From Chara braunii (taxonomy: Eukaryota > Plantae > Charophyceae): a DNA stretch of 64,000 bases. The notes below the pieces were generated by a model. That model saw only the letters and a program-made list of their open reading frames with translations. It was not told where the DNA came from and did no database searches. Below are positions 7,891 to 62,677 of the stretch, in pieces. Made by a program: the position numbers and the translations under genes. How positions within the stretch are numbered: position 1 is the first letter of the stretch; the number at the start of each line of letters is the position of its first letter. The stretch spans positions 5,015,886-5,079,885 of the forward strand of contig BFEA01000003.1 of assembly GCA_003427395.1 (NCBI GenBank), given 5' to 3'.

Positions 7891-7925
7891 CGAAGACTGA
7901 ACTTCTCAGAGGACTAGCGAAGTAT

Positions 7926-15252: not shown

Positions 15253-15482
15253 CCAGCTTCGACACTGACGAGCGATGTGCGGGCGAGCAGGGACCGGTCC
15301 GCTGGTGGACGCGAATGTCGGTCGTAGCTCCCTCAGGGCCGACCGCAGAGCATAGAGAACAGTAGAAAATGCCCTGCTTGCGCTGCCAGCTTCGGCACTG
15401 ACGAACGATATGCGGCCGAGCAGGGACAGGTCCGTTGGTGGAAGCACATGCCGGTCGAAGCTTACTCAGGGCCGACCGCAGA
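15253..15482. repeat. Diverged ~132-bp tandem duplication upstream of OLA1
   Basis: ccagcttcg.cactgacga.cgat.tgcgg.cgagcagggac...ctcagggccgaccgcaga twice; agcatagag..cagtagaaaatgccct is also at ~15078. Confidence 0.8.
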
Positions 15483-15686
15483 TGAGGTGGCCGGAGAGTG
15501 GAGACTGGCCCTTAGGAAGGGGTCACTAAGGAAAGGTCTCATTTGGAAAGACAAAGTCCCATTGACCAGCATGGCCGCCCGCCCACCCGCCGTCGACCGT
15601 GAGTCCAACCTCGCCCTCCCACCCACGCGCCTGCCGGCCCACTCAACCACTCGGACAACTTTGTCTGCCCGCCCTCCTGGGGTCTA

Positions 15687-15801
15687 GTCCCACTTGCAGT
15701 GTGTAGCAGTCGAAAACTACACGTTGCAACGCGTGGAGTAGTAAATGGTCGACAAAAGTTCCCTACGCATCGCACATATACTACACGTGTGCAAGTGGGA
15801 C
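15687..15801. mobile_element. Decayed Harbinger-like MITE
   Basis: gtcccacttgca...tgcaagtgggac inverted ends; terminus resembles those at 33559 and 34646. Confidence 0.55.
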
Positions 15802-35289: not shown

Positions 35290-37623
35290 AGAGGATGTGA
35301 GTGCCAAGCTTGTAGCAAAGTTCTTTACAACCTTGGCTACGGAGAAGCAACCACATTCAACGGGTTTTCGGAGACTGCTCCTTACCCCCTGGTCCAGCCT
35401 GGCTGAGCCTAAGACAGGCAAAAGGCAGCGCCATGAGAGAGTACAAGGCGAAGAATCAACGCGGATCCAAACAACCGCCACAACCAGCATAGCCTATGCG
35501 CAGGTTGGTGGACTCCTACAGGACCACCCACCCCACGAAGCTTGGATATACTTGGTTCTCCTCGCAGCGTACAGGCGACCACCCGCCTCCAAGACGCAAA
35601 CTCGACTTGGAACTAACAGTTGGCGCAGCATGGGAAACTCTCACTACAATTGAGAGTTCCATTGAATTTATCTCCGATCACAGGCCATTAGTAGCCAACT
35701 TTGAGTTGGCTGCCCAGCTGGTAAGGGAACCAGGCACATTCCGATTGAATGTGGAGCTGCTCAAAGCCCTAGGCATAGTACAATGGGTTGCAGAACATTG
35801 GGAGGGATGACACCACATAAGAGCAGACTTCGATGCGAAGGAGGATTGGTTGCAGATGGGGTTCAGAGTGGTCACAAGGGCACGCATCCAAGCTAGGGGC
35901 AGAAGGCAAGAAGAGCAGAAATGGAGGGACGTTATTACAAATGCAGAAGCAGAGTTAGACAAGAACCCGCTCACAGAACTGTACTGGCAGCACCAGACAG
36001 ATAAAGCCCTACAAGAGCTGGAGGAGATCAAGGTGAAACAACAAGTACTCTGGGCCAGCAGGGCACAGGAAAGAGGAATGACTATCAGCGATAGAATGAC
36101 AAAGGAAACGTTTCAACGAGTATGCCCACCATGAAGGCACTCCCTCATGAGAGAACTGCATCATCCTTTCTATCAGGAAGCAGCACCGACAAAGGACTCT
36201 GAAGCAATCGGGGAATACGCACTCACATACTTCAAGGACATTCTCACTTCAAGGAGACAACCCGATCAGCCGCTTCAGCAGCTAAGGGAGGAGCACGACT
36301 TGTGGCATCATACTCAGGCAAGACTGTCCCACGACGCCAGACAACGATTGGAAGAGCCACTAACGCTGGAGGAAATAAAGCAGGTTGTCAAAGCCATGGT
36401 CAAGGGAAAGTGCCCCGGATCAGCCGGCCTTCCAGTGGAGTTCTATGAAGCAAACATGTGACCATATAGGGTCCATCTTGCTTAATAGCTACAACGTAAT
36501 TCTCCAGTGTGGCTCGTTAACTGAGGATATGAAACTCGACATCAACGCTCTAATCTACAAGAAAGGTGACAAGTGCAACGTGCGCAATTGGCCTCAACGT
36601 TTCTTATAAGATTATCGCCAAGGTCCTGGCCAGAAGACTGACTCCTCATCTCTCAACGTTGGTATATACAGACCAAGGTGCTTTCGTTCAGGGCAGATCC
36701 ATCGCGGAGAACATGATGATGGCAGCAAGTGCGTTTGAGATCAGCCAAAAGGAAGACAGGCAAGTGATGGTGTCAATGCTTGACCTTAAAAAAACTTACG
36801 ATCGAGTTAACTGGTGGTTTGTTCTGGCCACACTGGAGCACCTGGGTTTCTGTCCCATCTATAGACGTTGGGTCAAGGAGCTCTATACAGGTGTTGCAGC
36901 CACAGTTAGTGTCAACGGATTCCTATCTCAAACATTCTCACTCACACAATCATTGCGTCAGGGATGTCCACTCGCATCACTGCTCTTCACTGTTCAAATG
37001 GAGGTTCTTTTGAATGCCCCCTGAGCCTCCCCTCACATTCGAGGCCTGGGCCTAGGAGATGGTGATACCATGCTAACCGGCGCCATTTCTGATGACCTCC
37101 TGCTCACCATGGAGGCAGAACCAGAGTCCATAAGCAAAGCCAAGGTACTGCTGGATTCATATGCGCAACTGTCGGAGGCCAGGGTAAATTGAGATAAGTC
37201 TGTATACTTCATACCAGCAAGATACGATCTCCCAGGACCAGACTGGGGCATGAAACGAGTTTCGTAGGAGGTGTCAGAAATATATCTAGGTATGCAAGTC
37301 TCCCTCACTAATGCACAGCCGAAGCAACAAGCCCTCCTCCGAGCTAAAACACAGACCTGCATACAGCGATGCAGAGTAGCAGTGGGAATTTCACTTTTCA
37401 GTCGAGCGTTGTTACTCACCTCTGTCGTTTTTGCTCAACTTTGGCATGTCGCAGCAGTATGCCTGATTTCCAAGCCAACAGCTAAGACGATCATCGCCGA
37501 TGCCGCCAGGTATCTTTGGAGGCCAACAACACATGAGGGGTAGAGATTCGTCTCCAAATGTGCTTGGATAAAGGTAACAACGACGAAAGCACAGAGGGGA
37601 TTGGGAGTCATCGACCTGCAGAA
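35290..37623 (+). pseudogene. L1/Tx1-type LINE ORF2, 5' part (APE endonuclease end plus RT), decayed
   Basis: LVDSYRTTHP..GYTW, SDHRPL, KCPGSAGLPVEFY, YKIIAKVLARR, QGAFVQGR, LDLKKTYDRV, LRQGCPL, ISDD, YLG, GLGVIDL. Confidence 0.9.
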
Positions 37624-38031
37624 AACGGTATTTTCGTTATAAGTGAAATTGTTTTCATGTTCACTTTTTTTTTTTTAACTGTAAAATGGCAGAACGAAAT
37701 GAGGAAATTATAGATGAAATAACGACAAAGCAAAATAACGACAAAGCGAAATAACGACAAAGCAAAATAAGGACGAAACAATGTTCATATATCAAAGCTT
37801 AGTAATGCAAACGACAAAATGATGCTCATATATGAAAAGTTGAAGGAAAAATTTAATGTGACAGTCATGATTATACAAGTTCAAAACAATCATGCTCCCG
37901 TGTTGCTTGTGCTCAAAATATAATACAATGTCAAGTTCTTACCTCGAATGTTTACACTCAGTAAACATGTCAATCTCATCAACAAAATATTAACCACGGA
38001 CTACAGCTTTAGTCACGCCTCATTGGCTTTC

Positions 38032-38799
38032 CTATCTAACCATGAACAAAATGTCAAATGTTATTCTAAGCCTCATATCAGAAATATTGGCTTGTGAGAA
38101 AGCAAATGGAGGGAAGTGACCTCTTGCAAGCAAAGATGCAAAACCTAACATAAAAACACCACAACTACAATGATCCTTTTGAGCAGGAATCCCATCTACT
38201 GATGTATCAAAGTAGGATGTAGGCCCGTCCACGTGATCTCTTTCGTGAAGATTATGTCGATGAAACTCCGCTTCGAAAAAATCTTTCAAACGTTCAAGGA
38301 CTGAAACATAGTCAACACGAGGGAGAGAGTCTATTAGGTGGAATTTACAGTTCGAACCGTCTATGCTGACATAAGTTAAGGCCTAGTGATTTCCAAAATG
38401 AAGAGGGATAATCACTAAGTCATAATAAAAAAGATTTGTGTCCTTCACCCATTTCATCCCTTCGGAATATGCGGTTTCAAACCTCGAAGCACCTGACAAT
38501 CGAGTGAAGAAAAAGAAATTGAAAATGTACACAAAAGGAACACTACATGAGTTTTTATGATCTCTTGTCACTTCTGTATATGCAGAATCAACCTTGATGT
38601 AGTCATTGGTGATCTGGACAGCTAGCAGGTACAAATTGACGACTTTGTCATTTAACCATTTCCCATCCTTGGCAACGACCATGATGTCTTCCTTTCCCAT
38701 CTTCCAGCTCCCCTTGTAATTGACAATGACGTATGCTTCATTGTCTTCGCTGCTGCCTGTAATCATGTCAAGATACTCATTTCTTCTACGGTGAGGCAT
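38032..38799 (-). pseudogene. Ulp1/SENP (peptidase C48) SUMO-protease domain
   Basis: WLNDKVVNLY, FNFFFFTRL, IIPLHFGNH*(W to stop), IDSL, QKDHCSCGVF; His/Asp/Cys triad order is preserved. Confidence 0.9.
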
Positions 38800-39899
38800 T
38801 CTGTTGCTACAGGAATCTGGAACGAAAGGTCATGAACTGCATACAAACACACATATAAACAACAATGGAACGACTAAGACTTCATACAAAAACGAACTTT
38901 TCGTTATGTGATGTACGACGTAGACCCGAGTTCATGTTTTTTGTTGTCTATCTGTTTCGCTATCAAAGCTGTCATCCACAATAGATAAACTGCAACCTTC
39001 GCGATGCAATTTTTTCCCTTCTCTGAGGCTTATTCCAACAACTTTAAACATCCTTAGGGCAACTGGCATTATAGATGGAAATGTCATGGGTGTAAGTCTT
39101 CTTCTCTTTTTTTTTGGCAATAACGGTAAAGTTGATAAGGCTTGCAAGCCACAACGAATGATATTCTTCTCACTCTGCCTTTGCGAACGTACGTGCGTCG
39201 TTTTCCACAATTATTTTCGTCGCCCTGCATGTTCATCAATATAAAACGATAATGATTGACAAGACAAAACCTTATGAGTTTAAGTTCAATTTTCCACATA
39301 ATTGCAAATAATAGATACACAATATTCTACTTCATCACCGAGCGTACGGTTGCAAACCTAGGCAAAAAATTAGTTCCTATGAGATGAGTGTATGTAATAT
39401 ACCCCCTAATCCGCATATAGTATTAGATATTCCCTAAGAGATAAGTACGTGCTCACCTCGGTGGCTCACTAACACTTTGTCTTCAACACAACCTTCAATC
39501 GCACCATGAGATGACGCAAAAGGAGATTCGTCGATAGATATCACGAGGTTAGCAGACTGTTGTGCTTCTGATTTTGCAAGCATAAGTTCAGGCTGCACAA
39601 GTGTATGTTGCTCCCGTGTACTTAGTACTATATGTCCTTCATCCTCTTCGATGACCCGTACATTGACAGTTTCCTTTGCACCTGCAGGCAGCAGTCGCGC
39701 TTTCATTCTTCATGTCCAGAGAGACTTCATGCTCATCTTTCTCAGATGGCATATCCAACGATGGCATCTCGAATTCTGCAAGTGCACCAGTATTATCCAC
39801 TTGTGTAGTAACACTCTCGCTCGCCAACACAGTGGTCGCCCAAACTTGGTCATCCGAAAGGACCTCCTCGACACATTTCGGCAGTTCTCCATGACTTAC

Positions 39900-40310
39900 G
39901 CCCTTAACGCTTGCACCGCCGCTTGCTCCCAAATCCTTGCCACTTGCATCGCCTCTCGATCCCGTGCCATGTGCACCGCCGCTTGGTCCTAATCCCAGAG
40001 GCGAACCCGATCCCCTGCAATGTGCACCGCTGCTTGGTCCTGATCCCAGAGGCAATCCCGATCCCTTGTCATGTGCACCGCCGCTTGGTCCTGATACCTT
40101 TCCCTCTATTGCTTGACGCCCTTGACACATTTCGTGTTTTTGCAGTTCACCAGAGTTATTGGCTTTCCACTTGCACCGACGCTCGGTCCCAGGCCCTTGC
40201 CACTGGCACCGCCCCGTAGTTCCGATCCCTTGCCATGTTCACCACCGCTTGATCTTGTTCCCTTGCCACGTGCATCGCCGCCTGATCCTGATCCCTTGCC
40301 ACGCGGATCG
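39900..40310. repeat. Coding tandem repeats (GPSGGAH..GSG)
   Basis: Repeated tgtgcaccgccgcttggtcc...gatcccttg units. Confidence 0.8.
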
Positions 40311-43300
40311 CCGCTCGCTCCTTTCCTTTCCCCAACTTTGTCTTGAAGTTCCTCTTCGATGCGCCAATTATATCCAAAAGCTGGACTTGTTTCTTTATCA
40401 TAGAACTCTTCCAGATACTCAAGCCATTGAGATATTTTGAACTCCGTAAAAGTTTCTTATCTCCTTGCATCCAGTCTTGATTGAGAAACCTTCAGATTAA
40501 GTCGCAGTAGTCGCTTGCCAATTTGATTTTTGGCGTGTGTGACAAACTTGGATTCTGGCATACGTCTGTGGAGGCAAAATTGTCACTTTCCTTCTTCTTT
40601 TATAGCCATTACCCAGTTCCCTCTCGCCAATGCAGGTTGGAAGTGGTGGGGGTGCCATATAATGTGATGACTCTATACGTCGCCAGGCATCACCGTATAA
40701 TCGTCTCGGCACACAATAGGTCCAGGGAAGCTGTGCAATGTCCGGAGGGATCCTGTCTCCAATCTCGTACTCCAAAGGCTTGGACGGAGGTTGTTGTGGA
40801 GTTTGAGAGCGTAGCAATTCCAAAACAACAGTCGGGCTATGTGCAAGTGCTGATAGACTTGCAATAATCTCTGGGGAGAGCATTGGTTGCACCCTCGGAC
40901 TCGGGCCATGTGCGAGTGCTGACATACTTGCAATAACCTTTAGGGAGAGCATTGCCCGCACCCTTGGATCATCCCGAACTGCGCCGGAAGGTAGCGCTGT
41001 TGTGTTGCCCGCCATGTGAGAAGGTTTAACTTGCACAAGAGAAGAAGTTGAGGGACGATTCGGTAATTGGCCCGTTGAAACTGCCATACTTGAAGCCTCT
41101 CCACAACCGGACGATGTGCCCGACGCACCCATCTTCTGCGAAGCCGAGCTACAAGTTTTTTGCCTCTCATCTGCGAAAGCCGCTTGCAAAGTACCATCTT
41201 CACTTTCTTCTTCTGAGTCCTCAGCATCAAAGCCTTCCCCAAAACAAGTTGCATAAGCTACGATTGTAAACGCCCCGATGTGTTCGTCGAAGTACATCAT
41301 CTCCAAACGGTCTAAAAATGTAACTTCCGTCTTCGTCGGTGTCTTATGATACCCCCTCAGAAGTGATTCCATTTTTCGCCTTCTGGCGACATATGCACGT
41401 TCCCCTCTGTTTTGTGGCTTAGTCTCGAAAAGGAACTCCCAAATGTTGACGATGTTTTGGCCGACTTTGTAGACGAGATCACGCCTTTCATCATGTTGAG
41501 GAGGCGGCTTAATAAATTTGGCGTAGTAACCTCCAGTCACGACCATCCTGTTGACGAATGAACGAGAAACTCGAACTTCATACCCTCCCCTTCCATAACA
41601 ATGCAATGACGGTGACTCTTTAACAACTCCCAAATCAACGCCGCATGACCTTTTCCCAAGAAAACAACCGCCTCATCCGCAGGACAAAAATGCTCCAATG
41701 TCTCCACCATCGCATTTGACTCCCTTTCCATACCTTTGTACACAAATTTCTCCTTTGGCTCCATACATGTCATTTTCAACTTCGTGGGCGTGAAGTTCTT
41801 CTCCACGACATCAGTCAACATCTTTGGCTTTCTCTCCCTGCGCACAAGTGCTGATAAGTCACCCGCCTGCTCGCCAGATGATCGATCTGCAACTGGAGTG
41901 CTTGCTGGAATGTCTTCAAGCAAGGGAATAGTGTTGCGGTGATAATCCCCATCGTTGGAGTACATGATGACAGCCATTCTGTCTGTGTCCTCCAAAGACA
42001 AGTTCGCAACCTTATATGAATGCTTCGCCTTCGTTTGTTGCTGATGAGTCCACTTTAGAATAGACAAGTGAATGTCCCAACGTGTAACTCGCTTGAAAAA
42101 TGTAAACTCGCAAGACCGCGGAACGAAGCACAATAATGTCCAATAATCACCACTCAGTTTTCCCATGAACTTCCATAGACCATGAAAGACTTCTTCAGTC
42201 CACATTCCCATCTGGGTTGAGTGACACAAATCCAGCACGGCCGTGTGGCAACTCAGATGTTTGACAACTCTATATATTTCCTTGGAATCCATTTCGTCTG
42301 AAATATCGCCTGGCTCTCATTGGAACGGGACGAAAACATACTTCACGTTCTGTTTTTGGAAATGTATATATTTTGCTGTGTCCGACATTCTTATGCTTTG
42401 CGAACCCCTGGTTTCTGATCTGCGCAGCAGCTTGTTGACAATAACACGTAGGGCCCGAGGGCGTTGGACCACTGGCCGCTCCATTGAGTAGTAAGGGACA
42501 TGTCAACCAAATGATTAATCCTGGTCAAACGAAGAGTCTCTCCTGCAAACTTTCTATAATCTGTATTTTTCACTTCCGCCGCAGAGCCGCCTTTAGCTTC
42601 ATGACAGTTCGATACGTACCACAACTTCCGTATGTTCTGGATGACCACGATCTGGTGCGGTGGGGTATTCCATTTGTCCTTCGCGTTCTGGAAAGTGCTC
42701 AGCGTGCCGTAATTGTCCATGCTCTTACCCGGATAGTAAACAGGCCTCGCAGTCCAGCGATCCAATCGGAGTTCTTGTGCGATGCCAGGGCATTCAACAA
42801 AACACCTTCTTGCCGTCGCCACGTTATGCTGACCGCTGAGAGGGTAGTAGTAGTACTTGTTCACAGAGCCGAGGTCGAATTCATTGGGCAACACCCTCCT
42901 TGCTCTCACAATCCTCCTTGAAGTGTCAGTATGCATTGTATCATGGAGGGCAACCAACAAAAGGACAGGCTTTTCATACAATGTACAAACATTTACACCG
43001 GCAGTTCCAATCGTTCTCTCTCTGATAGCAGCCTCACCCGATGCAACCATTGCGTCATAAATGTCATCAATCGTCTGTTGCACAAGATAGTGTTGATTGT
43101 ATCTGAATTCCCCGTCGGGGATATCCAGAATTCTGTCGAACTTGACATAAATGAATTCCATATCTGGACACTGGTTCCCATGCTCGTCCAACTCAAGGAA
43201 GAAGCCTTTGTTGAGAACACCAGAAGAAGTCTCCGATGATACATTTCGCAAACTTGGCGGCCTATTAACTGTCTTGCCTTCGGCCTCTTCATCCGATTGT

Positions 43301-43569
43301 GGTTGTTCTGCTGGAAAAACGGAAGTCTTTTCCATGACACCACCCTTTGCCGTTTTTTTCTTTGGCTGCTGCTTTTTCTTCGTGGCTGCCTCAGTCTCCC
43401 GTGTGCGCTGGACCGCCTCATCCACGGGCAATAGTTTCAATTGTCTTTTCTGACCCGCTTCCTGCTTACTCCGTTTACTATCCAAAGCACTTCCCCTCTC
43501 CTGCCTGTGCTTCCTCTTTCGCTCGGCGAGCCTTGCAGCATCTGTATGCGCAGTCACAACCACTGTCTC

Positions 43570-43917
43570 GTGGTGCACCCCCCCTCGTGTTGGATGCACA
43601 TCTGCCTCACATCCTTCGTTGTTGCCCCCATATCCCCCTACCATACCAACCTCTCCACCCAATTCGTTGATAGTGTGCTCAGTGTCTTCATCCTGTCCAA
43701 CCACTTTACTTGTTTCCCCATAGCGCCTCGTCATGTCACCGACGTGGTGCACCCCCCCTCATGTTGGATGCACATCCGCCTCACATCCTTCGTCGCTGCC
43801 CCCATATCCCCCTGCCAGACCAACCTCTCCACCCAATTCGCTGATAGTGTGCTCAGTGTCTTCATCTTGTCCAACCACTTTACTTGTTTCCCCATAGCGT
43901 CTCGTTATGTCACCGAC
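43570..43917. repeat. ~174-bp tandem duplication in the cargo gene
   Basis: gtggtgcacccccc..tggatgcacatc...tttcccatagcg..tcg.tatgtcaccgac occurs twice. Confidence 0.85.
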
Positions 43918-45194
43918 ACCCACCGCATACTGTTCCTGTCCTCCTGCTCATTCTGAATATTCCTCGCCGTTCTCGTCATCATCATCCGAGTCTTCAAAAT
44001 ATTCATGGGCTTCCTCTGTGCGGCTTGGCACAGTGTAGTCGCAGCGCTGCTGGCCCACCAAGGGGAGAGGTCCCTTGGTGGCTGCTGCATAGCGCGGTTG
44101 GCTGCCCAAGGCAACTGGTGCTTTGGTTGCCGTTGGCCTGGACGTCACAGGGGCTGACGGCACGATCAGTCCGCGGTACGGACCCTTCTCTCCAATCTGC
44201 CCAGCTTTCGGACTCGGCGGTGTGTCGCGGATCGTGATCGAAGGCCCAGTCTCCACGGTTAGCACGCATTTAGGCTCCGGTATGCGGTCTTTTGGATGCA
44301 CAACCGGCTCTTCGCCCGCGATTACATTACTGTCGAAAAACCCGAGGACGTCGTCGAGCTCAGGCAACTTCACTTTCGTACTCTCTGGTGTGTTGAATAC
44401 ATCAACGAGCGACTTGCCATATCCTGCGTGTTTGGCCCATCGAAGAGCGACGTGTTTAACATTCGACATCCTTTCCCCTCTTCCATTCAGGACCATCGTC
44501 AACTCGAACATTGCAGACGAAGCATCTTGTCCAGTCCACCTCACCAGACCGCCAACCAGCACAATACTTTCTTTATGACCACGTATAGAACAAGGCCACT
44601 CGATGGTTCTTCGATCTCCCCCACCCAGTCCAACATCTAGAACTTGTCCTTGTGATCAACCACGGGCACATCGTCCCGCCGACCCGCGGTAGTCGTTTCA
44701 CCAGACGGTTTATGTCCGAGCACAACGTCCACTGCAGATCTTCCCTGCCGAGGACCAGGCATACGTTCCTGACCCGCAGACCCGCCAGTCATCAACACAG
44801 CCTTATCCGGAACACGAGTCGACGGAGTGTTTGTGGAAGGTGCACCCCTCGGAACCGGAGTGCCTGTGGAAGGCCCAGTCCGTGGAACCAGAGTGCCTGT
44901 GGAAGGTGCAACCCGCAGAACCGGGGTGCGTCGACTCTTAGTTCCCGGTGTCTCCTGACTCCCCCCTCCAGCGGTCGGTGTCCCCTTCGATTTCTTCGGA
45001 GATTGGTCCATGCTCCCAAAACTCTTACTTGCTCGTCATTTACTTGCCTTCCCCTCTCGTTCCATGTTTTGCATCGTTGCCGAATCTGAAAGCAACACAA
45101 CACATCACCGCAAAGCCAAATATCAGAAGGTCGCCCAACATTGGCATGGCACGACGAGTAGAAAAGTGAAACGTTTTAGATAGTGGTAAGGCAG

Positions 45195-45525
45195 TGCAGC
45201 TCGATCGTGGCAAGGCAGCCCCGGAGACGGAGTTCGAATCGACCACGATCGTGTTCAATTCAACCGCGATCGTGCTCGCCTGGACTCGACCGTGTTCGAC
45301 GCGACCGTGTTCGTGTTCGACTCGATCGTGTTCGACTCGATCGTGACGGGCCAGCTCGATCGTGTTCAACTCGATCGTGGTGGGCCAGCGTGACCCAAAA
45401 GATCGTGATCGTGGCGGGCCATGACCCAGCTCGATCGAGTTCGACTCGAACGTGGCGGGCCAGCGCGACCCTCGAGGCCAGCTCGATCGTGTTCGACTCG
45501 ATCGTTGCTGGCCATCGTGATCAAT
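45195..45525. repeat. Array 1 of CpG-rich pseudo-palindromes
   Basis: Repeated tcgatcgtgttcgactcgatcg variants. Confidence 0.85.
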
Positions 45526-45562
45526 CGAGGCACACTGCAGCCGGCTATCAACAAATGCACCG

Positions 45563-45900
45563 CTATCAATTCAGAATTCAAAGCCTACATCCATTATCAA
45601 TGCCAAGCATTCAATTGGCAACGCATGCAATCGACACCCACAACGAGCGNCAATTCAGAATTCAAAGCCTACATCCATTATCAATGCCAAGCATTCAATT
45701 GGCAACGCATGCAATCGACACCCACAACGAGCGATACACAGTCTCTACGCATGTAATCGACATCGACCGATGCACCGCAATCAATTCAAAATTCAAAGCC
45801 TATATCCATTATCAATTCGAAGCATTCAATTGGCAACGCATGCAATCGGCACCCACAACGAGCGACACACAGTCTCAACGCATGTAATCGACATCGACAA
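45563..45900. repeat. Three tandem copies of an ~80-115-bp unit
   Basis: caattcagaattcaaagcctacatccattatcaatgccaagcattcaattggcaacgcatgcaatcgacacccacaacgagcg x3; one junction has an N, so this may be partly an assembly artefact. Confidence 0.8.
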
Positions 45901-46013
45901 TCTCACATCAAACTTACTGCTCCCATAACATACATAGTCTCAGTTCACACTCTTGCTGAATAGCTCACATTTCTTACACTGTTCATCTCCCACGACCTCT
46001 CCCACGACCTCGT

Positions 46014-46889
46014 CTATCGTTTAGCCCTGAAACCGTACAGTGCGTCCAGGGATGAACCGTACGTCAGGAGCTGGGGACTAGACAGGGTAGCAGTGGCGGA
46101 GAAGCGAGACACGTATCGCACTCGGACGAAACCACATGTTCTGGCTAAAGTGTGACCGATGGCGTCTCGAATGACCGTCACGTACTCCTCGACCTTCTCC
46201 CAATGCCGGGGTGCGTCAACCAGCCCCGCCAATTTCACGTCAAACTTACCGTTCCTATAACCATGCGGTACCAAAATCGTGTCCCCGTCAACGATGAGCT
46301 CGTTTCTGGACACGTAAATAGCTGCCTCCGCTGAAGTCTTACTTCTATTTCTTACCGAAACACACAGAACCCTAGCGAAAGGGAAACGATAGAGTTCAAC
46401 ATGCACGCAGTAGTACGACACACTCCCCGTCAAGTTGTCCTCGAAGGGAAGGGGATATTTCTCTAGAAACTGGTTGTATTTCGCACAATCCAGCAACTCC
46501 TCCTTCATCGATGGTCCCCACAAGCGCGGCGAACACGACACGTTGTGCGCACTCAACGATAAAGACAAGCCTCGGGTACAAAATGCTGCAGACAACCTCG
46601 ACGTGTGTTTCGTCACGAGGATGTGGTCGAGGAAGATGAATGTCCCCCATTCCTGGCTGGAGACAAGTCGATAATCAGACGCCCATGGGCAGTCTTTCAT
46701 GGTGTTCTCCCAGTCTAACTCGGACCATGCATCAAAAGGCCTGTCAAACCAGGGCACAACGCTCATCCAAGGGTCTGATTCGAAGTCATCTCTTCGAGCC
46801 CCAAGTACAGTAGTCGCCTCCCTTGAACCCCGCATGTACGACGCACTAGCATTCAAAGGGAACGAGTAATCGAACCAGTGATCCATCGC
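46014..46889 (-). CDS. Orphan ORF inside the transposon (~290 aa from MDHWFDY)
   Basis: Uninterrupted, compositionally globular ORF; the track ORF extends to 47123. No family recognised. Confidence 0.55.
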   Translation of the reverse strand, partial: AMDHWFDYSFPLNASASYMRGSREATTVLGARRDDFESDPWMSVVPWFDRPFDAWSELDWENTMKDCPWASDYRLVSSQEWGTFIFLDHILVTKHTSRLSAAFCTRGLSLSLSAHNVSCSPRLWGPSMKEELLDCAKYNQFLEKYPLPFEDNLTGSVSYYCVHVELYRFPFARVLCVSVRNRSKTSAEAAIYVSRNELIVDGDTILVPHGYRNGKFDVKLAGLVDAPRHWEKVEEYVTVIRDAIGHTLARTCGFVRVRYVSRFSATATLSSPQLLTYGSSLDALYGFRAKR

Positions 46890-47079
46890 GAATGTCCTAC
46901 ACACACAAACGATTGACGACCACAACAAACACTCAGGGAACGAGAGAGCCATTGCTAAGGTCGAACCAATGTCACACACACAACAAGGACCCGTCGCAGT
47001 CGCGAAAGTCGTACACACAACAAGGAGCCATTGCGAATGTCCAATACAGAAGGAGAAGACACACAGAACGACAAGCGAG

Positions 47080-47572
47080 GCGAACTCGACGGCCATCGTT
47101 GTGTTCGTCTCGACAAAGGCCATCGGCGCCTATCCATCGTCGAGTTCGAATCGACGACGGCCAAGGCCAGACGGCCGTCATCGAGTTCGAATCGACAACA
47201 GCCCAGCATCAAGACCTCTGGCCACTGTCGAGTCAAATCCTGACGCCCACCGCCAAGGCCTCTGGCCATTGTCGAGTCGAACTCGACGACGGATGAATCG
47301 ACAACAGTGGCCAGACGGCCGTCGTTGAGTTCGACTCGACAGTGGTCAGACGGCCGTCGTCGAGTTCGACTCGACAGTGGCCAGATGGTCGTCATCGAGT
47401 CGAACTCGACGGTCGGCCAGCGCCAAGGCCTCTGGCCATTGTCGAGTCCGACTCGACGATGCCCGCAGGTCGTTGTCGAGTTCGACTCGACCGAAGGCCG
47501 TTGTCAAGTTTGACTCGACGATGGCCATAGGCCTTGGCGCTGGTCCACCGTCGAGTTCGACTCGACGACGGC
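47080..47572. repeat. Array 2 of pseudo-palindromes GTCGAGTTCGACTCGAC
   Basis: Example at 47359-47375; more than ten variant copies in both orientations. Confidence 0.9.
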
Positions 47573-48629
47573 CTCTGCGAGGGCGGAAATGCCACGTGGC
47601 AGCACGTGGTTGCTTCACGGGGGTTTACCGTTCTCCCAGGTCTCCGCTGCTGCCTTCGATGCGAATGCTCGGAACTTCGCTCCGATGCTGCGCAAACCTC
47701 CAATGTGCGAGTGGGAGCTCCGTTGCATTCTGCGCAAGCCTCCGATGTGCGAGTGAGCACTCCGCCGGGCTCGGACGATGCGCGCGAACCTCCCCAGCGC
47801 TCTGTCGTTCTCGACAAACTTCCAGAAATGGAAAATGGTGGGCCCACACCACTATTTGTACTTTCTGTGGAGGGCAGAATGGACGCTCGGCACAGCCGTC
47901 CGATCGCGAGATCTTGACGGTTGGGGTGTCCGGCAGTGCGGCCTGCGGGGTGTGGATTCGGGTCCCGGTGCCGCGGGGGAATCGGTGCCGCGGGAGCAAC
48001 GTTTCGGGTCCAGGGAAAGTCTGGGCCGTCGATCCGTCAGCTGAGGGCCAGGATCTGGTACGGGGAAAACCGGTGCCGCGGGGAGAATCGGTGCCAAGGG
48101 GGCGACGATTCGACTGTCGGTGCCTTCCGCGACTGTTTAAACGGGCTCCGCAGGTGGATCCAAGGGTCTTTTTCCTTGCGTCGCTCCCCGAGAAAAGTAC
48201 CGGTGCAGTGTCACCTTCGCGTCGACACGACAGACAGCTGCATTGCTCCGCCACGGTAGCCGCGTTGCTGCTCCAATTCGTGCCTTCTTTGACCCAGGTG
48301 AGTTCAGAATCCACACCGCCCCCNNNNNNNNNNNNNNNNNNNNNNNNNNNNNNNNNNNNNNNNNNNNNNNNNNNNNNNNNNNNNNNNNNNNNNNNNNNNN
48401 NNNNNNNNNNNNNNNNNNNNNNNNNNNNNNNNNNNNNNNNNNNNNNNNNNNNNNNNNNNNNNNNNNNNNNNNNNNNNNNNNNNNNNNNNNNNNNNNNNNN
48501 NNNNNNNNNNNNNNNNNNNNNNNNNNNNNNNNNNNNNNNNNNNNNNNNNNNNNNNNCCCCCCCCCTCCCTTTCGTCATTTGTGGTTTTTCAGGACGGCAA
48601 CAAAATTTCTCCGACAGTTCACAGAGGCG

Positions 48630-49260
48630 TCCATCATCGACTCCGACACGACGACCGTTGTGTTCAACACGATGACGGACGAGCATGGACATGTTCACCA
48701 CGTGTTGAACACGACCCCACCGTCGTGTTCAACACGATGACGGTCGCTGTCATCGTGTTGAACACGACCACGGTGGCTCGCCACGACCACGCAGTCGTGT
48801 TCAATACGATGACGGTCGTGTTCGACACGATGACGGTCACTGTCGTAGTGTTGAACTCGACCGCGGTGGCTCGCCGTCGTGCCGGTGATCGTGTTCAACA
48901 CGATGACGGTCGAGCGCAGACATGTTCACCTAGAAAGCACCGTCGTGTTCAACACGACCACGGTCGCTCATCGTCGTCTTCGACACGACCATGGTGGCTG
49001 TCGTGCAGAGACGGGTATCGAGCGCGACATAACGACGGTCGAGCGCGGAGATGTTGAACATGACCACGCCGTCGTGTTGAACACGATGACGGTGGCAGTC
49101 ACCACGTGCGCCTGTCGTGTTGTGCAATGCGATGATGCGTCGTCGTGTTCAACACGAACGCGGCGGCAAATCATCGTGTTCAACACGACAGCCGGCGACT
49201 GTTCAACACGACATCCGTCGTCGTATTCAACACACAGTCGGTCGACGTGTTCGAGTCGGT
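48630..49260. repeat. Array 3 of pseudo-palindromes GTCGTGTTCAACACGAC
   Basis: Example at 48942-48958; more than ten variant copies. Confidence 0.9.
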
Positions 49261-49486
49261 CGCCATGTCTCTCGTGCATCGCTTCTGTTGCAGACTGTGT
49301 TTTTTTTTTCCGCCTTCACGGGGCTGATCTTTTACATCAGCTGTGTGTGGCTAGCAGTGGCCGCGCTATACCACATGTGTTGCACTCTATATATACCGCA
49401 TGTGATCCATCTAGTTGTGGATTTGTTACTGATATACATGTTTTGTGCCAGTGGTCCACTGTTTTGTCATCGCAGAAACGTTTTAA

Positions 49487-52306
49487 ATGGCTTGTGGTGG
49501 GCACGCACCACGACAAGCTGCCAGCACAACTTTGGAAAGCATGGACTGTGTGGCATCTAATATACTGCCTAATGATGAATTTCCTCCGCCGGACCTGCCA
49601 ATGTTTTCACAATACGTTCAAATAACTCCAGAATCTCCTGATCATAAAAGGTCCCGGATGGCTGCATGTGAAGAAACCACATGCAAAAGTGCATCTCCAG
49701 CCTTGGGCGGGCCAGTGAAAACCTCTGATGTAGAAGGTTCGGAAGGTCAGGGTAGGGCCTGCTCCGGTGACAAGAACACATCCGATGTAGATCGTATCAT
49801 GTGCGTGCCGAGAAGTTCGCTACGAGATTTCAAGTGCACAGGCCTTCTGTTTGACGAGAGTGATGAAGATGGTTCGGAATCAGGTTCTTCGATGTCATAT
49901 GATGCCGACAGTTCTCCAGACAAAATTGATTATCCACAAACTTGCGATAGTGATGCCACTGATCTTTACTGCCGCAACGATATGGAAAATTCTGATGTCG
50001 TCTCTGATTTTGATGACATTTTTCCAAAACGTTTGTCGTCTGAGAAGCGTCCTTATACTTTCCGTATCTGAATGTCGCAGTCAAAGAAGATTCTGCAAAC
50101 AGTTCACAGAAAGCTCACCAAAAAAACACCGTCGAGTGTGCGTGGACAAGTTTGTTGTAAACGTCAAAGCTGTCCGGAGTGCATAATACTCTAAGGATCA
50201 CAAAAGTAGAGATGCATGGTGGGTTGAAACGTTAAAGAGGTTCACCTTCGTGGAAGATGAGAAAAAGATTGTACAACCTATTGTAGAAAAAAGAAAGGTG
50301 TGCATTAGTGCATGGTGTTTCACACTTGGTGTGTGCAGGAATACATTTTTGAAAAAGAGGATGACTTTGTCAAAAGGTTACATTATGCCGGAGCATGGCA
50401 ACATTGGACTCAGACGCACATCTGCAACATATGCGATGATGTACGAAAAACTAAGCTCCTTTGTGCGCGATAATGGAGATTCCATGCCCAATGACATGAG
50501 AATCAAAGATGGGGAATCACGAGTGGTTTTGAGATTGCCTGCTTGCTATAACAAGGTTGACATTTACAAGTTGTTAACATGGGTGTCCCTTCTGTTTCTC
50601 TCCAAGAAGAAGAACACACTTCTGACATGTGAAATTTCATGAAGAAACTTTGCAAAATGCGAGAAGTGTGTTGAGTTCAAAGAATCTATCAATTTTGCGA
50701 AGTTCGTACGTGTGCGTGAGTATTTTGTTTCGGAACGTGAAAAACACTTGGACTTGCATCTCCAACATCGTGTTGCTTATGAGGTGTGGAATGATGAGTC
50801 GAGGAGACCAGATTCCAACAGTTTATGCATCATTATTGACGGTATGGACCAAAGCAAGACAAGTATTCCACACTTTGGCGGAGAAAACAAGTCGAAGGCA
50901 TTCGCGAATATTCCGATGATGAAAACACATTTAACAACTATTATCGCGCACGGTCGTTCACCGTCTGGCCATGTTCACACATGGTACCCTTGCTATCCAC
51001 ATGATTCCAATGTTGTGGTGTCATCCATTATGAAAGTTTTGCGTGACATACAGGCGACAAGCGACTTACCTCCTAAATTGAGGATACAAGTTGACAACTG
51101 TTGGGGAGAAAACAAAAACAAATACGTTTTCTCTGTGGCCGCAGCTTTGGTGAAATTGGCTTCTTCAAAGAAGTTGAATTCGGTTTTATGTTGGTAGGAC
51201 ATACACATACGGACGTTGATGCCACTTTCAGTCATTTCTCTCGCAAACTGAAAATGCGCGATCCTTATACCATGCTCGACCTCTTCAAACTCGTTCCCAG
51301 TTCCCAAAAAGAGCGTCCTTTGTGCACATTCATGGACGAAATTGTTGACTGGCGGGGAGCTGTTAAGCCCTTCCTGGTCAACAGACTGACCGGTCATACT
51401 AAGCCACATTTATTTAGGTTTTATATGGAGGATGACAATCTTGTGTTCCGGTGGAAAGAGTATTGCACTTCTCCGGTCTATTGCTTTAAACGAGATGAAA
51501 ATAAAGCATATGCTGGACCCGAATGGCCATTCGAGCCTTCACCTGTTATCCCATCACCTATTCGAGCTGTTAAAGAAACATCACGTAGTCAGCCCACTAA
51601 GGATAAGAATTCGAATTTCAAATAAGGAATTGAAGGCGTGAAGACGTTTGTTGAGTGGTTGGAAAACAAGCAGCACGAGTGGTTGGGAATGAAAGATGAG
51701 GTTAGCTTCTCAAATGAGAGTGCTCTTTCTCACTGGAAAAATTTCGTGGACACAATCGAGCAAAATTATGGGTCTGGCTTTGCGAAAACATCACTTAAGG
51801 CTGGCTTTTGGCCCTCGCAGGACAGAATTACGAAGGACGATGCTGAGGATATTGATATTGCCTTCCTCTTCGAAGAGTCGTTGTTCGTTGGGTCAGCCAA
51901 TGAGCGTCCAAAAGCAGAGCTCGACCCGGTTGTGGATGTCGAAAAGGGTCAACTCGTTCTCTTGCGTCCTTCGCAAGATGATATCGATCAGGGAGTTCCC
52001 GTGTGGATGGGTAGAGTCATTTCTGATATTGACAACGATAGGAAGTCGCCTGCTTTCAATCATGTTTTTATTGAATATTGGGTGCCACAACCTGTCGTCA
52101 AACATCTTTCTCTGCAATATGCAAATGCATGGAAGAAGATATGGAAGAAAGACAGCACAACAGCACAACAGTGGCAGCACGTGGACTGTGTTTTGTGGAG
52201 CTGGTCATCAAGGATGTTACATTTGAAAAATGGAGTGCACATTCCCAAATCAGTCAGAGAGAAAGCCTTGACATGTCTTTCACTTCCCGATGATGAAGAC
52301 CCGTAG
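49487..52306 (+). pseudogene. DDD transposase, Sola1-like (frameshifted), with C-terminal SH3/Tudor-like segment
   Basis: VCISAWCFTLGV, EHGN, GDSMPN, IIIDGMDQSK, IQVDNCWGENKNKYV, FMLVGHTHTDVDATFS, GQLVLLRP..VWMGRV..VFIEYW. Confidence 0.82.
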
Positions 52307-53726
52307 GATAAGTCACTGAGAAGACCTCATTTCGTGCGTGTTGGTGTACCATTTACTTGTCATTGAACTTCCATTCATATATAGTTAAACTATATTGCAT
52401 TGGCTTGCCTTTTACTTCCCGATGATGAAGATCAATAAACTTTAAGTACGTCGTTGAGAAGAGGTAATCATATTTCATTTGAGCGTATTGCTGTATCATT
52501 TAGTTGTCATTGAGCTTCTGTATTTCATGTGTTGCAGAATGCTTCATTCAACGACTGGATGACCGCCAAGCAATATGGTGTGAGACAGAAATGTATGGCA
52601 TGATATGGGGTCTATCTTTTTCACACCTGAAGTGGTTTTCGATGATGCAGTACTCAGTGTCAGAGGTGTGGATGTCGCACCGGATTGCTGGGAGCATTAT
52701 CCTCGACAATGTTTGTATATTTGTGGTCGTAGGTGTTGTAGAACAAGAGAATATCCGCGATAAGCGTTTGCACCGTACTCAGAATTGTACTATTCAGCAG
52801 TGAAGTTCTACCACAACGACTTCAAGCTGATGACCAAATGCTGCAAACTTTCTTTTCTTATTCATAACGATTATTCTACAAGTGCAAACATATTCAATGC
52901 ACATGACATCGACGGATGAAGACGGGAAGCATTTCCAAGGAGGATCATGGACCAACCGTTGCTCAAAGCACTCGTGGATGGGCTCGTGGACACAGCGATT
53001 ACATATGTACGAAGTCTTCTGCTGCGCAAGTATGAATTCATAGAAACTTACGTAGAGTACAAGGAACCCACATTCGATGGTCACAATGAGACGAACACTG
53101 TAGAAGATTTGACAATTTACACGAGGAGAGCGTTAAATTTATCACGCAGATCGTATTAATATGTTCATTACGTACTATATCTGATTCAAGTCGATAACCT
53201 TAGAATATCGTTTTCAAGTGTTATATGCCTAGTAGTCAAGTCGATTTCAATTATAGCCTAAGGACTTTGACGAAGATTTTGACAATGTGTAATTTTAAGA
53301 GTTCATAGATGCACCATTGAGCTGATGTAAGTGGCACAGTTTTGCTTTTAATATAATTGGACTTTTGCATTAAATTTTCCTTTCACGGTCTCCATATGAA
53401 GGGTGTTGTTATAGTTTGAAACAACTTAAGGTCTTGGACTTTAGAGAGCTGCATTAAATTTTCCTTCCACTGCGCTTTGTTTGAATTTGTTAACTTTCTG
53501 TAGAGGGTTTTACAAATTTCGCTATTCTTTCCTTCACATATGATGTCATTCTTTTCGTTTATATTCTAATTGTTTCGACACTTCTCCGCTCAAGGTTTAC
53601 ATTGTGCCGAAATATTAAAATCCTCTTATTTTGTTCTACAATTTACCTTTTTTTCGGTTACTTTATTAATTTCATTATGCTCACTTTTTACAAAACAGTT
53701 CATTTTTAACGAAAACATCGTTAAAA

Positions 53727-55840: not shown

Positions 55841-57165
55841 ATGGATCAATTGACTGCGGCCCAACTTGGTATGGTACTAGCTGCGGTCATCCGGTGGGTG
55901 CGGATGAGGGAGCATTGCACTGTTATCTCCGCTGCCATGTTCATCCATGTCATGGCGAACATTGTCGCGCTGCAAAACATGAGGAATGTGTTTTTGCTCC
56001 TTGCTTATGAAGTTTATGAGGGCGCAGGGTGAGCGGACGGTCGACTCTCACACGTTGGTCGACGACGACGACTGTGGGTGCGGGAGCGAGTGGGAGGAGT
56101 TGAACATGACGAGAGTGGGATACGAAAAAAAATTCAGGGAATACACACGGCTGACACGTCCCATATTCGACGAAATTCTGGAACGAATTCGTCCAAGGAT
56201 TCAAAGGAGGGATACTCGCTGGAGAGATGCTTTGCCAATGTCTCTGAAGTTGGCCTTCGCACTGTACAGATGGGCAACGGACGGGTTTTATCGTCAATCC
56301 GGGAACGACTTCGAGATTGGGTTACACATCGCCATACGATGCACGGACGACGTCGCGAGAGCTATTTGTGCAGAGTATAGCAGAGTACGGTCATGTTTTG
56401 TCTTGGTCGACAGGCGCTCGCTTGCAGGCGACCCTCGACTATTACGAGGGGAAAGGCTTCCCCCGGTGTTTCGGGGCCATAGACTGTATACACATCTATA
56501 TTGAAAAACCACGTGGCGGGGAGGTGGAGCCGTACTTCGATCGCAACAGACAGTACTCAATCCGAGCGCAGGTTGTGTGCGATGAGAACATGCGCATACT
56601 GCATGTTGTCGTCGGCGCACCTGTTTTATTTCATGATTCACGTGTTATACGTCTGTATGATATGTACTGGCGTGGAGAGGAAGGGGGGGATCCTTTCACG
56701 CGGAGGACAAATGTGTTGATGGATGGCGTGGTGGTGGGGAGATATCTGATGGGAGATGCTAGGTATCCAATCCTATCGTGGTTGATGACGCCGTTTGTTG
56801 GCACTGACCGGACTGCGGAGGAGATATCCTATGACAACGAGTTTTTTGCCCTGCGCAACGTGATTGAAAGGTGTTTCGGCAGGTTGAAAGGAGTGTGGAG
56901 ATGCTTTGAGCGTAAGCATATCGCAAACATAGAGAATATTTGTTATCGGTTTTTTGCTTGTTGCATTCTACATAACATCATTATTGATGTGGGCATCCCG
57001 GTCGACGACGAACTGTTGCGACGGAGACCGGATGATGATAACGAAGACGACGACAATGAGGGACCACCTGCGGATGATGTCGCCAACGATGGAGATGGTG
57101 GAATCGAAGGAGAACCTGCCGCCGCGATGGACAATGACGATGGAGATGGCGAGGCCGATCGATGA
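55841..57165 (+). pseudogene. Harbinger (HARBI1-like) DDE transposase, frameshifted
   Basis: FREYTRLTRPIFDEIL, FGAIDCIHI, HDSRV, YLMGDARYP, RNVIERCFGRLKGVWR, CCILHN, acidic tail. Confidence 0.93.
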
Positions 57166-60796: not shown

Positions 60797-62677
60797 TCAA
60801 CCACCCTCCGCCTCCCCCCTCTGTGTCGTTGGGGGTGTAGACGTCGGTTGTCTCGCCAACGAACTGGACAGCATTGCAAAACACTGCAAGAGCGTGGTGT
60901 TCCCGTCTGCCATGGTCTTGTTGATGTCAGCCATGGCATCAATAAAACTTCCATACAACTTATCAGTTTGCCTTTCCATGGCATCCACGAGAGCGTGGGC
61001 GACGTCTACGAACGTGCCCCTCCCCCTTCCCCCCCACCCTCTACAGAACTCTCCGACGGCGAACGTCTGACGTTCCCTCTCCCCCCACCACGTCGAGCGA
61101 ATTACGCTCCATCAGCACTATTGCTGTCTGCTTTCCGGCGGCCGCCTCTTGTGTCCTCCCCACCGCCCGTGTCAAAGCTTTCCTTGTCCCGGCTTGTCTG
61201 TGTTGGACAACCCTCCTTGTAGATGCGCACTCTGCATGAGACCAGCGCAGTGTCCATCTGCTTTTGCAAGCTTCAAGTTCCACTGCAGTGCTTCGTACAA
61301 CTCGCGTTCAAACGTCAACGAAAGTCCTGCCGCCTTTCGCACATCCCGTGACGCATTCTTGTACGACGGCGCGCCAGACTTCCCTCCAAAATCACGAATC
61401 CTCTTTGCGCTATCTAGGAGCCCGTAGTACTTCCTCTCGCGTTCGTCCACGGTGCGCTCGCAATATCCTTTCTCGACAAGCTTCTTCACAATCCACTCGT
61501 ACTTCTCCTTCCTGCTTCTGATCTGTTGCCTGCCTTTTTTCTTTTGCTGCATACAGTCTTCTTCGAAAAGCAGTTTCAGCAGTGGGACGCTCTCCCCGGA
61601 ACCCCAATCCGCACCTCGGACTTCGGGCTTGTCCCCGCCACGCCCTCCCCCACCTACCCTTCTGCTCTTCTTCCTTGCTTCTCCACCCACCCCGTCATCC
61701 GTTTTGCCTTCATCGCTAATGTCGACTGTCACATGCCCCGTGCTTTGCGTACCAGCTATGCCGGCAGTCGGTGATGTCCACGTCTCGCCCATTCCAGAGT
61801 CCTGCTTGTCCATATTTTCACCCAGATCGGCGACCGATTCAGAAGGGTCATTTTTCGTTATTTCGGAATCGACAACATGAAGCCGCCAACCGTCATGACT
61901 GCGGAACGCTGCATCTAAAGGCATGGACTGCGCAGTGCCTCCAACTGGTGATGGAGGAGGCGGTCTTGAATAATAGATCATGGGGGTGGCTCCACCTACC
62001 CCCGCATGCATGTGCCCAGCAGGGCCAGCAACGTATGATGTATGTGTCGATGATGCAGGCCCCCCCGCAGGCACCTCTCCTTCCCTGTTGGGTCCCATGG
62101 CTGGCGGTGAGTGTTGCCACTGACCTCCACATGGCGTGCCCCACCCATGATACCCAACACTGCGCCCATACGATTCTCCACCTCGCGGCGGTCCAAGGCT
62201 ATCACCTTCGGCGAGGAGGGCAGTCGTAGATCGAGGCTCTCTTCCCACAGTGTACATCGAAATGTGCAGATTCTTGAACGCTGGCAGGGGCGGCAGACCG
62301 TGTGGCATAACGGGAGTTGGCCGTATGTAAGACGACCCATCTCCAGCAGGTGACGAAGCTTGATAACCTGGGACGTATGTGGCAGGGGTCGATGGTGGGA
62401 CATCCGCCATGCATGTTTCGACAGGCATTGGGGACGGGGATGGGGAGAGGGATGGCGAACGGGGTTGGAAAGTGTGATGACCACCGTCCATGCCTTCACT
62501 ACAAAGCTTGTACACGTGGGACTTCAACGCACCTCCGCGACCCCAGCAATAACACGTGGCTGTGATAGAAGCGTGGATGAATCGGGGATCTTCGACGCCT
62601 GGATCACGTGACAAATGAGAAGTGCTTTGCGTTATGGCTGCGATGATAAATAGACCGATTGGACAATCACGCGACAT
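60797..62677 (-). pseudogene. Harbinger Myb/SANT-like (trihelix GT-type) DNA-binding protein; frameshift near 61170
   Basis: WGSGESVPLLKL..RKEKYEWIVKKLVEKGYCERTVDERERKYYGL..FERELYEAL; helical C-terminus in ORF 60797-60988. Confidence 0.85.

Follow-up and report, generated by a model that had tools for sequence, protein, structure and literature searches.

A single DNA transposon of the 16-kb class occupies positions 37624-53722 of the window, the 64,000-nucleotide stretch of the Chara braunii genome analysed here, and of this assignment we are close to certain. The element is a decayed, neutrally evolving member of a multi-copy C. braunii family of Sola1-like cut-and-paste transposons of ~16 kb, and its host site is an older LINE. 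It carries a transposase gene read rightward and an orphan gene and a cargo gene read leftward, with a GC-rich (62%) central stretch, probably a bidirectional promoter, between the divergent genes (47581-48323). A disabled methyltransferase-like cargo, a SUMO protease and lineage-specific palindromes suggest that the family may tell its own copies apart and protect them from silencing.

The earlier note on this DNA had described one giant element with terminal inverted repeats (TIRs) and a restored LINE frame, and the TIR pair, the LINE alignment and the termini of sister copies bear this out. The left TIR (37624-37654, plus strand) and the right TIR (53692-53722, minus strand) have arms of 31 nt, the Sola standard being at least 11 bp; the arms are 77% complementary and form the sole long-range inverted pair. 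The left terminus recurs in seven sister loci whose flanks are unrelated, and one sister, L003, matches the right end up to 53717. The target site duplication (TSD) reads AGAA on the left (37620-37623) and AAAA on the right (53723-53726), so that the proposed length of 4 bp held, whereas its exactness did not (three of four positions match). Excising the element with one TSD returns an open LINE frame, and an alignment with an unrelated LINE protein runs to the left end and picks up again at 53725 with the same residue, 230. In the window copy, 4 bp is the only length that restores both this frame and symmetric ends. A search of the sisters for another copy readable at both ends found none: L003 has lost its left end, the right end of L009 lies in a gap, and L001 ends ~290 bp short. 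In L009, both flanks alike consist of a GA microsatellite.

Eight sister loci are collinear with the window element. An assembly gap (48324-48556) interrupts the window copy and is bridged by none of the Logan contigs; no gene runs across it. In sister L001, which stays collinear to the left and right of the gap, ~33 C-rich bases stand at that place, so the two sides are continuous and non-coding, and the gap-corrected length of the element is ~15.9 kb. Several changes are private to the window copy. A deletion junction at 42435-42441 marks the loss of ~670 bp of cargo that are present in all sisters, taking out most of the helical domain between two predicted folds of the cargo. Duplications of 174 bp (43569-43916, minus strand, in the N-terminal part of the cargo) and 131 bp have been gained, and the protease exon has a stop codon just past the catalytic His. 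Together with stops and frameshifts in the transposase and dN/dS values of 0.4-1.2 against the sisters, this agrees with the earlier view that the copy is decayed.

The transposase is a plus-strand pseudogene (49487-52306), as had been proposed. Broken genes were searched against databases piece by piece, and two pieces of the transposase match DUF7869 (E 4e-26 and 1e-26). Three Asp motifs, the predicted DDD triad, are kept in all copies examined, their roles being set by motif comparison with Sola1-1_AP. By-eye comparison with the supplement of PMC3985635 makes Sola1 the closest group by motif and a better fit than Sola2, and the initial label of Sola-like thus holds at the level of motifs and of the 4-bp TSD; the transposase is best described as Sola1-like by its motifs. 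As described for the group (Bao et al. 2009, via PMC10741241 and PMC3985635), Sola1 elements share with the Chara element a DDD transposase, a 4-bp TSD, short TIRs and sizes to >15 kb, and the second and third motif blocks of the Chara transposase resemble those of Sola1-1_AP. In contrast to the DLEK/DLQQ described there for Sola1, the first acidic motif in Chara is DGMDQ, and a Pfam match to DUF7869 and a multi-gene cargo set it further apart. A literature search found no mention of DUF7869 or DGMDQ. A metagenome scan returned 11 distant DUF7869 loci (25-49% identity), all on short contigs. Neither cargo nor orphan was matched there and the ends could not be read, but the contigs are too short to exclude cargo.

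The cargo gene runs on the minus strand from 45065 to 38035 and terminates in Peptidase_C48, in line with the multi-domain cargo ending in Ulp1 that had been expected. Its N-terminal part (43222-45065, start codon at 45065) holds an acidic/basic low-complexity stretch and a small conserved domain (44296-44511). There follow a predicted ParB/sulfiredoxin-fold domain (42441-43221), a predicted beta-class N4/N6 DNA methyltransferase-fold domain (41307-42440), a conserved domain without a family match (40461-40895) and a Gly/Ser-rich low-complexity region with tandem units of 51 and 33 bp (39437-40460). A probable intron, recognised by its GT/AG signals (38830-39436), leads to the Ulp1/C48 SUMO-type protease exon (38035-38829); splice signals and automatic gene models point to a fusion of cargo and Ulp1. 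Less broken copies match Peptidase_C48 in Pfam with E values of 4e-16 to 6e-23. The His-Asp-Cys triad and the oxyanion Gln are kept in copies of subfamilies A and B and of the distant lineage C.

Sequence-profile searches for the ParB-like and methyltransferase-like domains returned nothing in Pfam, PHROGs, PADLOC or the PDB, and their assignment therefore rests on structure. The fold was predicted for an intact cargo homologue (31% identical, 856 residues, pLDDT 82) rather than for the window copy. Residues ~490-790 of this model align with M.BceJIV (Z 16.4), CcrM (Z 16.0) and M.PvuII (Z 15.3) over ~215-230 residues; the homologue model has the circularly permuted Rossmann fold, with motif IV before motif I, and its strand positions agree with the motifs. 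Within the same model, residues ~15-175 align with KorB (Z 7.3) and PadC (Z 7.2), and six ParB/Srx members score a middling 5.7-7.3. The nearest atlas clusters to the cargo include phage fusions of N6_N4_Mtase and ParB_N; among viral contigs, no relative of the ParB-like domain was found, and no helix-turn-helix reader was identified. Both predicted domains are degenerate at their catalytic signatures. ParB proteins need the arginine of the GxxRxxA motif to bind CTP; it is found in 0 of 25 cargo sequences, all of which read xGQH(N/T/S) in place of GxxR/DGQHR (SGQHN in the window copy). Likewise, none of 32 cargo sequences has DPPY, NPPY, SPPY or any other form of (D/N/S)PP(Y/F/W) at motif IV, the window copy reading DLCH for DPPY and FLGKGH for the FxGxG of motif I.

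The orphan ORF (46017-46886, minus strand, ~290 aa), also seen earlier, is open in the window copy and kept in distant lineages. A length-limited homologue search and the atlas were blank for it, it has no Pfam match, and an AlphaFold2 model from seven sequences reached a pLDDT of only 35. Its identity is 37% between subfamilies A and B and 46% between B and C. Comparison of subfamily majority sequences indicates purifying selection on all genes between subfamilies, with dN/dS of 0.07-0.21 for the transposase, 0.21 for the ParB-like domain, 0.19 for the methyltransferase-like domain and 0.47 for Ulp1; for the orphan, pN is 0.40 and dS is saturated.

A 17-bp palindrome, RTCGWGT-TCR-ACWCGAY, links the three genes. 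With up to three mismatches it has ~36 matches in the window element, against 0-1 in each simulated element, and these fall in three clusters, one ahead of each gene, as the earlier note had reported. The first array (45227-45502, ~9 units) lies 160 bp upstream of the cargo start, the second (47074-47566, 12 units) 190 bp upstream of the orphan start and the third (48636-49260, 15 units) 230 bp upstream of the transposase start; each has its own variant of the motif. The second and third hold units in both orientations, and both orientations within one array fit a double-stranded DNA site better than an RNA hairpin. A sigma-70 scan of the sequence was at chance level, the model being inapplicable to a eukaryote. 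Lineage C, with the same gene order, has a different, 22-bp palindrome, and the two motifs are mutually exclusive: copies of A and B hold 13-130 of the 17-mer and none of the 22-mer, whereas in lineage C the 22-mer occurs 28-34 times and the 17-mer 0-1 times. A and B have the motif in common with cargos 70% identical but such divergent orphans, and B and C differ in motif despite their more similar orphans. Across the three or four lineages compared, the motif appears to track the cargo and the transposase, not the orphan. In subfamily B and lineage C, motifs also occur inside the coding repeat of the cargo.

These observations can be read as a lock-and-key system of anti-silencing. The cargo protein would descend from a phage-type ParB-methyltransferase fusion and, because both catalytic signatures appear lost, would act as a DNA-binding scaffold. 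It would probably be a dimer that recognises the two-fold symmetry of its site, in the manner of ParB at parS. From the arrays it would bring the Ulp1 domain to remove SUMO from silencing factors, shield the promoters against host methylation, or both, and the three genes of an element would remain expressed while an active copy supplies the protein. Since site and reader would drift together, each lineage would aid only itself, as VANC does for VANDAL. This mechanism as a whole, with a cargo that reads the arrays, Ulp1 delivery and/or shielding, and lineage specificity, seems to us evenly poised between right and wrong. Stated in full, as a system unrelated to VANC in which a prokaryote-derived ParB/pseudo-methyltransferase reads a lineage-specific palindrome of 17-22 bp and directs a SUMO protease, or else a non-standard base-modifying activity, to the promoters of its own element, we give it a probability of roughly 0.35. 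The earlier analogy with VANDAL fares unevenly. Its logic gains indirect support from a motif that changes with lineage and from genes under selection, but its anti-silencing part does not: CpG decay after insertion is equal in arrays (0.056-0.059) and genes (0.053-0.060) and leaves no footprint of methylation protection, so that in these dead copies the arrays had no lasting protection, and poly(A) RNA gave only 12 reads in ~4.2 Gb over the central 6 kb (6-13% of each run; strain and tissue not stated).

The most serious competitor, though an improbable one, is that the transposase reads the palindromes, for autoregulation of three promoters or as internal synapsis enhancers, and that the cargo has no sequence specificity. 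Against the preferred mechanism, the motif changes in step with the transposase no less than with the cargo: A and B transposases are 86-94% identical and share a motif, whereas identity to lineage C, with its other motif, is ~32% in the one piece seen. There are precedents as well, since the transposase of AtMu1 acts as a sequence-specific activator, while Spm TnpA is transposase-derived (10.64898/2026.08.24.746577). However, neither the termini nor the subterminal regions of the window copy contain the motif, and strong selection on the two DNA-handling folds of the cargo would be left unexplained.

Less probable still is a cargo that is an active DNA-modifying enzyme marking its own arrays by 4mC, 6mA or non-standard chemistry, as has been published as a proposal for an Ectocarpus protein (PMC12477816). 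The complete beta-class fold of the homologue model (Z 15-16) favours this, as do the motif IV Asp (kept in 29 of 32 sequences, with a Cys following in 18) and the motif I Gly (30 of 32). Nevertheless, all 32 lack the Pro-Pro-aromatic stretch of motif IV, motif I is without its second Gly, and the comparable known cases, METTL14 and the DIRS1 methyltransferase, are inactive (PMC4738411).

We regard as slightly weaker again a ParB/parS-like handling of DNA with no link to silencing, in which a coat of cargo protein on the arrays would serve to compact, tether or partition the excised 16-kb element in giant coenocytic cells. The predicted ParB fold and 16-17-bp palindromes recall ParB/parS, the nearest architectures are phage fusions tied to packaging loci (PMC4738411), and the motifs in the coding repeat and the missing protection footprint suit it. 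In contrast, the absence of the CTP-binding arginine and, in the window copy, the fixed distance of the arrays from start codons, like that of regulatory sites, argue against it. More improbable yet are arrays that no protein of the element reads, being host transcription factor sites or by-products of repeat turnover. Motif copy number is indeed very variable between copies and units turn over through duplication, yet over 577 units the 17 positions show 81-95% conservation, against 40-60% in their flanks, and an element-encoded reader explains more easily how lineages sharing one host genome could exchange the whole motif for another. That the cargo or the orphan is a separate nested element can be set aside: dS between subfamilies climbs centreward, from 0.3-0.4 in the transposase and Ulp1 to 1.4 at the N-terminus of the cargo and saturation in the orphan, which indicates that the central part has its own history, but recombination between lineages accounts for this gradient, gene order is identical in nine A/B copies and lineage C, no internal termini were found, and sisters with the same left end carry both cargo and arrays, so that the refuting outcome named in the earlier note did not occur.

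Known systems share parts of this design. The 21.5-kb Sola1 element of Ectocarpus, Sola1-1_Ec32, has a gene opposite its transposase with a ParB-like and then an N4/N6 methyltransferase domain, for which a self-binding and self-modifying role is proposed; similar transposon proteins of green and red algae are covered in the same source, which refers to Iyer et al. 2011 and to Petroll et al. 2025 (PMC12477816). The earlier claim that such an element had not been described is thereby overtaken. The likeness, drawn from the available part of that paper, is one of architecture; the degenerate catalytic motifs, Ulp1, orphan gene and lineage-specific arrays of the Chara element receive no mention in that part. 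New in Chara are the pseudo-enzyme, Ulp1 and the co-varying palindromes. The Chara cargo may be a separate capture, because the matches that phmmer found for it were confined to Chara (15 of 16 checked) and a single metagenome contig. Arabidopsis VANDAL elements likewise combine a transposase with accessory genes including Ulp1 (VANC, PMC5735166; Ulp1-bearing VANC/KIU, PMC13317346; PMC10398659) and carry short tandem motifs in non-coding parts that differ between related families. However, they have a MuDR transposase, a TSD of ~9 bp and asymmetric motifs of 8-9 bp, unlike the DUF7869 transposase, 4-bp TSD and 17-22-bp palindromes of Chara, and no VANC homologue was found here, the cargo and orphan having no Pfam match and the predicted cargo folds being ParB and methyltransferase. 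Fusions of ParB and N6_N4 methyltransferase in phages and bacteria, and ParB/parS itself, resemble the Chara system in domain order, predicted folds and palindromic sites of 16-17 bp; the Chara protein differs in its eukaryotic transposon setting, a 200-residue helical insert, lost catalytic residues and an identity of 7-10%. KDZ/Plavaka elements reportedly carry TET/JBP genes (Iyer et al. 2014, cited in PMC12477816). These too are DNA transposons whose DNA-modification cargo is thought to alter their own epigenetic state, with other transposases and an active dioxygenase in place of a pseudo-methyltransferase.

For annotation, it matters that ~110 clusters of "hypothetical proteins" in Chara represent parts of this cargo. 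Sequence-specific anti-silencing by transposon proteins has been proven for only a few systems, chiefly VANC and Spm TnpA, and algal ParB-methyltransferase proteins have been proposed to bind and modify their own elements, with no target site named in the available part of the source (PMC12477816). In Chara, candidate sites can be named outright and vary from lineage to lineage, which makes the proposal directly testable by cross-wise binding. If true, the family would provide a natural series of reader-site pairs, diversified within one genome.

The transposon at 37624-53722 is a real element bounded by 31-nt arms that are 77% complementary, and it is a family member, not a chance patchwork. 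Cargo homologues led to eight further loci (L001-L007 and L009) that are collinear with the window; seven of them have the element's left terminus in common, their flanks are unrelated, and the right end is present in L003. Cargo and palindrome arrays thus form one unit with the element, as had been proposed. Identity to the window is ~85-94% in subfamily A and 67-84% in subfamily B (L004-L007). This copy has a deletion at 42435/42441 where all sisters retain ~670 bp of cargo. Contig depths summed across the element centre (several hundred to 2000, versus ~20 for single contigs), which are not themselves a copy number, suggest tens of copies. DNA reads containing the stretch come from one organism, and 11/11 homologues of the first conserved cargo domain are Chara braunii gene models. 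Among the sisters, L001 has a ~1-kb insertion in the orphan gene 3' end (7737-8813), L009 sits in a long (GA)n microsatellite found on both sides (3850-4241, 23203-23283), and L007 has an additional orphan gene with an array block, lying upstream of its main copy (46-2606) and representing either an adjacent element or an internal duplication.

The bases outside the ends are AGAA (left) and AAAA (right). Because the host LINE frame is open once the element and one 4-base copy are excised in silico, and because an unrelated LINE protein (locus L010) matches the left flank and resumes at the same residue at 53725, the target site duplication (TSD), readable only in the window's copy, is 4 bp with one base changed later. 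The exact ends described in the earlier note therefore stand for the terminal inverted repeats (TIRs) and restored LINE frame, but not for the TSD, which has one mismatch. The gap at 48324-48556 reflects a break in the assembly at a poly-C tract, lies in non-coding DNA and has been set ~200 bases too long; the sequence on either side aligns with sister L001, which has ~33 C-rich bases in between, and no contigs of run X1 crossing it were found. The single N at 45650, flanked on each side by an identical 84-bp copy, probably marks a scaffold overlap; a 131-bp duplication missing from the sisters adjoins these copies (45567-45898). Elsewhere, the window holds an LTR retrotransposon integrase core (rve; 6592-7314, plus strand), a PIF/Harbinger-type transposase piece (DDE_Tnp_4; 56317-57165, plus strand), a Pro/Gly-rich ORF of 501 codons without a Pfam match (61172-62677, minus strand) and, amid repeats, an intronless 400-aa YchF/OLA1-type GTPase ORF (Pfam MMR_HSR1 and YchF-GTPase_C; 13199-14401, minus strand), either a host gene or a retrocopy.

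The transposase (49487-52306, plus strand) conserves three Asp motifs, and two of its pieces match DUF7869. It is classed as Sola1-like, which at motif level agrees with the earlier Sola-like assignment, because by eye its blocks 2 and 3 are nearer Sola1-1_AP than Sola2 (supplement of PMC3985635) and because a 4-bp TSD and short TIRs are Sola features (PMC10741241).

Each gene is preceded by an array of one motif, as first noticed: ~36 units of a 7-3-7 palindrome (RTCGWGT-TCR-ACWCGAY), versus 0-1 expected, lie in three clusters (45227-45502, 47074-47566 and 48636-49260) situated 160, 190 and 230 bp upstream of the cargo, orphan (46017-46886, minus strand) and transposase start codons. Fixed positions are 81-95% conserved across 577 units, flanks are not, and both orientations occur within one array. 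Splice-like signals suggest that arrays 1 and 3 lie within 5' UTR introns. Two adjacent CACGTG (G-box) sites occupy a GC-rich stretch between the divergent genes (47593-47610). The distant lineage C (L011, L023), with cargo 25-30% identical, has the same orphan, cargo and Ulp1 order, and in L023 a transposase piece lies on the opposite strand. The lineage C motif is a 22-bp palindrome, AAGTTCG-GATCCCGG-CGRACTT, and the two motifs are mutually exclusive across lineages; L010 (cargo 42-48%) carries a few units of a variant that keeps the outer GTCGA arms. Orphans are 37% identical between A and B, which have one motif, and 46% between B and C, which have different motifs; across the lineages compared, the motif tracks cargo and transposase, not orphan. 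Each lineage's palindrome also occurs inside or beside the low-complexity cargo coding region in B (L004-L007, ~15000-15800) and C (L023, 17283-21143).

Compared through their majority sequences, subfamilies A and B give dN/dS values of 0.07-0.21 in transposase parts, 0.14-0.29 in the first four cargo domains, 0.47 in Ulp1 and 0.61 in the short tail domain. For the orphan, pN is 0.40 and synonymous sites are saturated. This copy diverges near neutrally from its sisters (3-6%), in agreement with its earlier description as decayed. By these measures, the genes were functional while the lineages were active, and the window copy is dead. A-B synonymous divergence (43231-47070 versus L004-L007) is 0.3-0.4 at transposase and Ulp1 but reaches saturation at the orphan. 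This rise toward the centre points to exchange of a central module between lineages, suggesting a swap with the palindrome retained.

Sequence-profile searches with the cargo gave no match. An AlphaFold2 model (65-sequence alignment headed by an intact metagenome homologue, pLDDT 82) resembles beta-class N4/N6 DNA methyltransferases at residues ~490-790 (Z 14-16; Foldseek E 2e-6) and, at a consistent but middling Z of 5.7-7.3, KorB, PadC, SerK, a ParB-N domain, SbnI and sulfiredoxin at residues ~15-175. Phage ParB-methyltransferase fusions are among the nearest atlas clusters. Motif IV is DPPY or a variant in 0/32 sequences (mostly DLCx), motif I usually reads FLGKxH, and the ParB motif reads xGQH(N/T), with arginine in 0/25; both modelled folds are therefore most likely pseudo-enzymes. 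Ulp1 keeps its catalytic residues across lineages, and splice signals and automatic gene models predict that it is joined to the cargo. Used as a phmmer query against 1.84 billion representatives, the methyltransferase-like domain hit 112 clusters, with identity as low as 22%. Their domains keep the order ParB-like, helical, methyltransferase-like and conserved tail, plus Ulp1 in several gene models. Of 16 origins checked, 15 were C. braunii and one was a JGI metagenome contig (L008, 7672 bp), probably from another charophyte, with an intact 1419-codon cargo frame, a Ulp1 gene and a terminus near 7621 resembling the family's.

The earlier analogy with Arabidopsis VANDAL holds in the logic of an element with accessory genes including KIU/Ulp1 (PMC5735166, PMC13317346), but not in membership. 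Nor is the kind of element undescribed, since PMC12477816 already presents Ectocarpus Sola1-1_Ec32. No mention was found in print of a radiation in Chara, of a cargo that has lost both catalytic motifs, of the added Ulp1 and orphan, or of explicit lineage-specific palindromes.

Post-insertion changes in four subfamily A copies gave no array protection footprint in CG decay (0.056-0.059 in arrays versus 0.053-0.060 in main coding parts); CHG decay was similar or higher, and CHH about half. On this measure, array methylation matched that of the rest of the element through most of the life of these copies. Protection may still have operated during an active phase, because VANDAL targets regain methylation once VANC is gone (PMC10398659). 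Three poly(A) RNA runs placed 12 reads on 44700-50650, and the element is silent in these samples. We consider the whole self-recognition and anti-silencing mechanism plausible, at a probability of about 0.5; among the functional tests made here, one was negative and none positive. It is directly testable, and the L008 cargo is the best experimental template.
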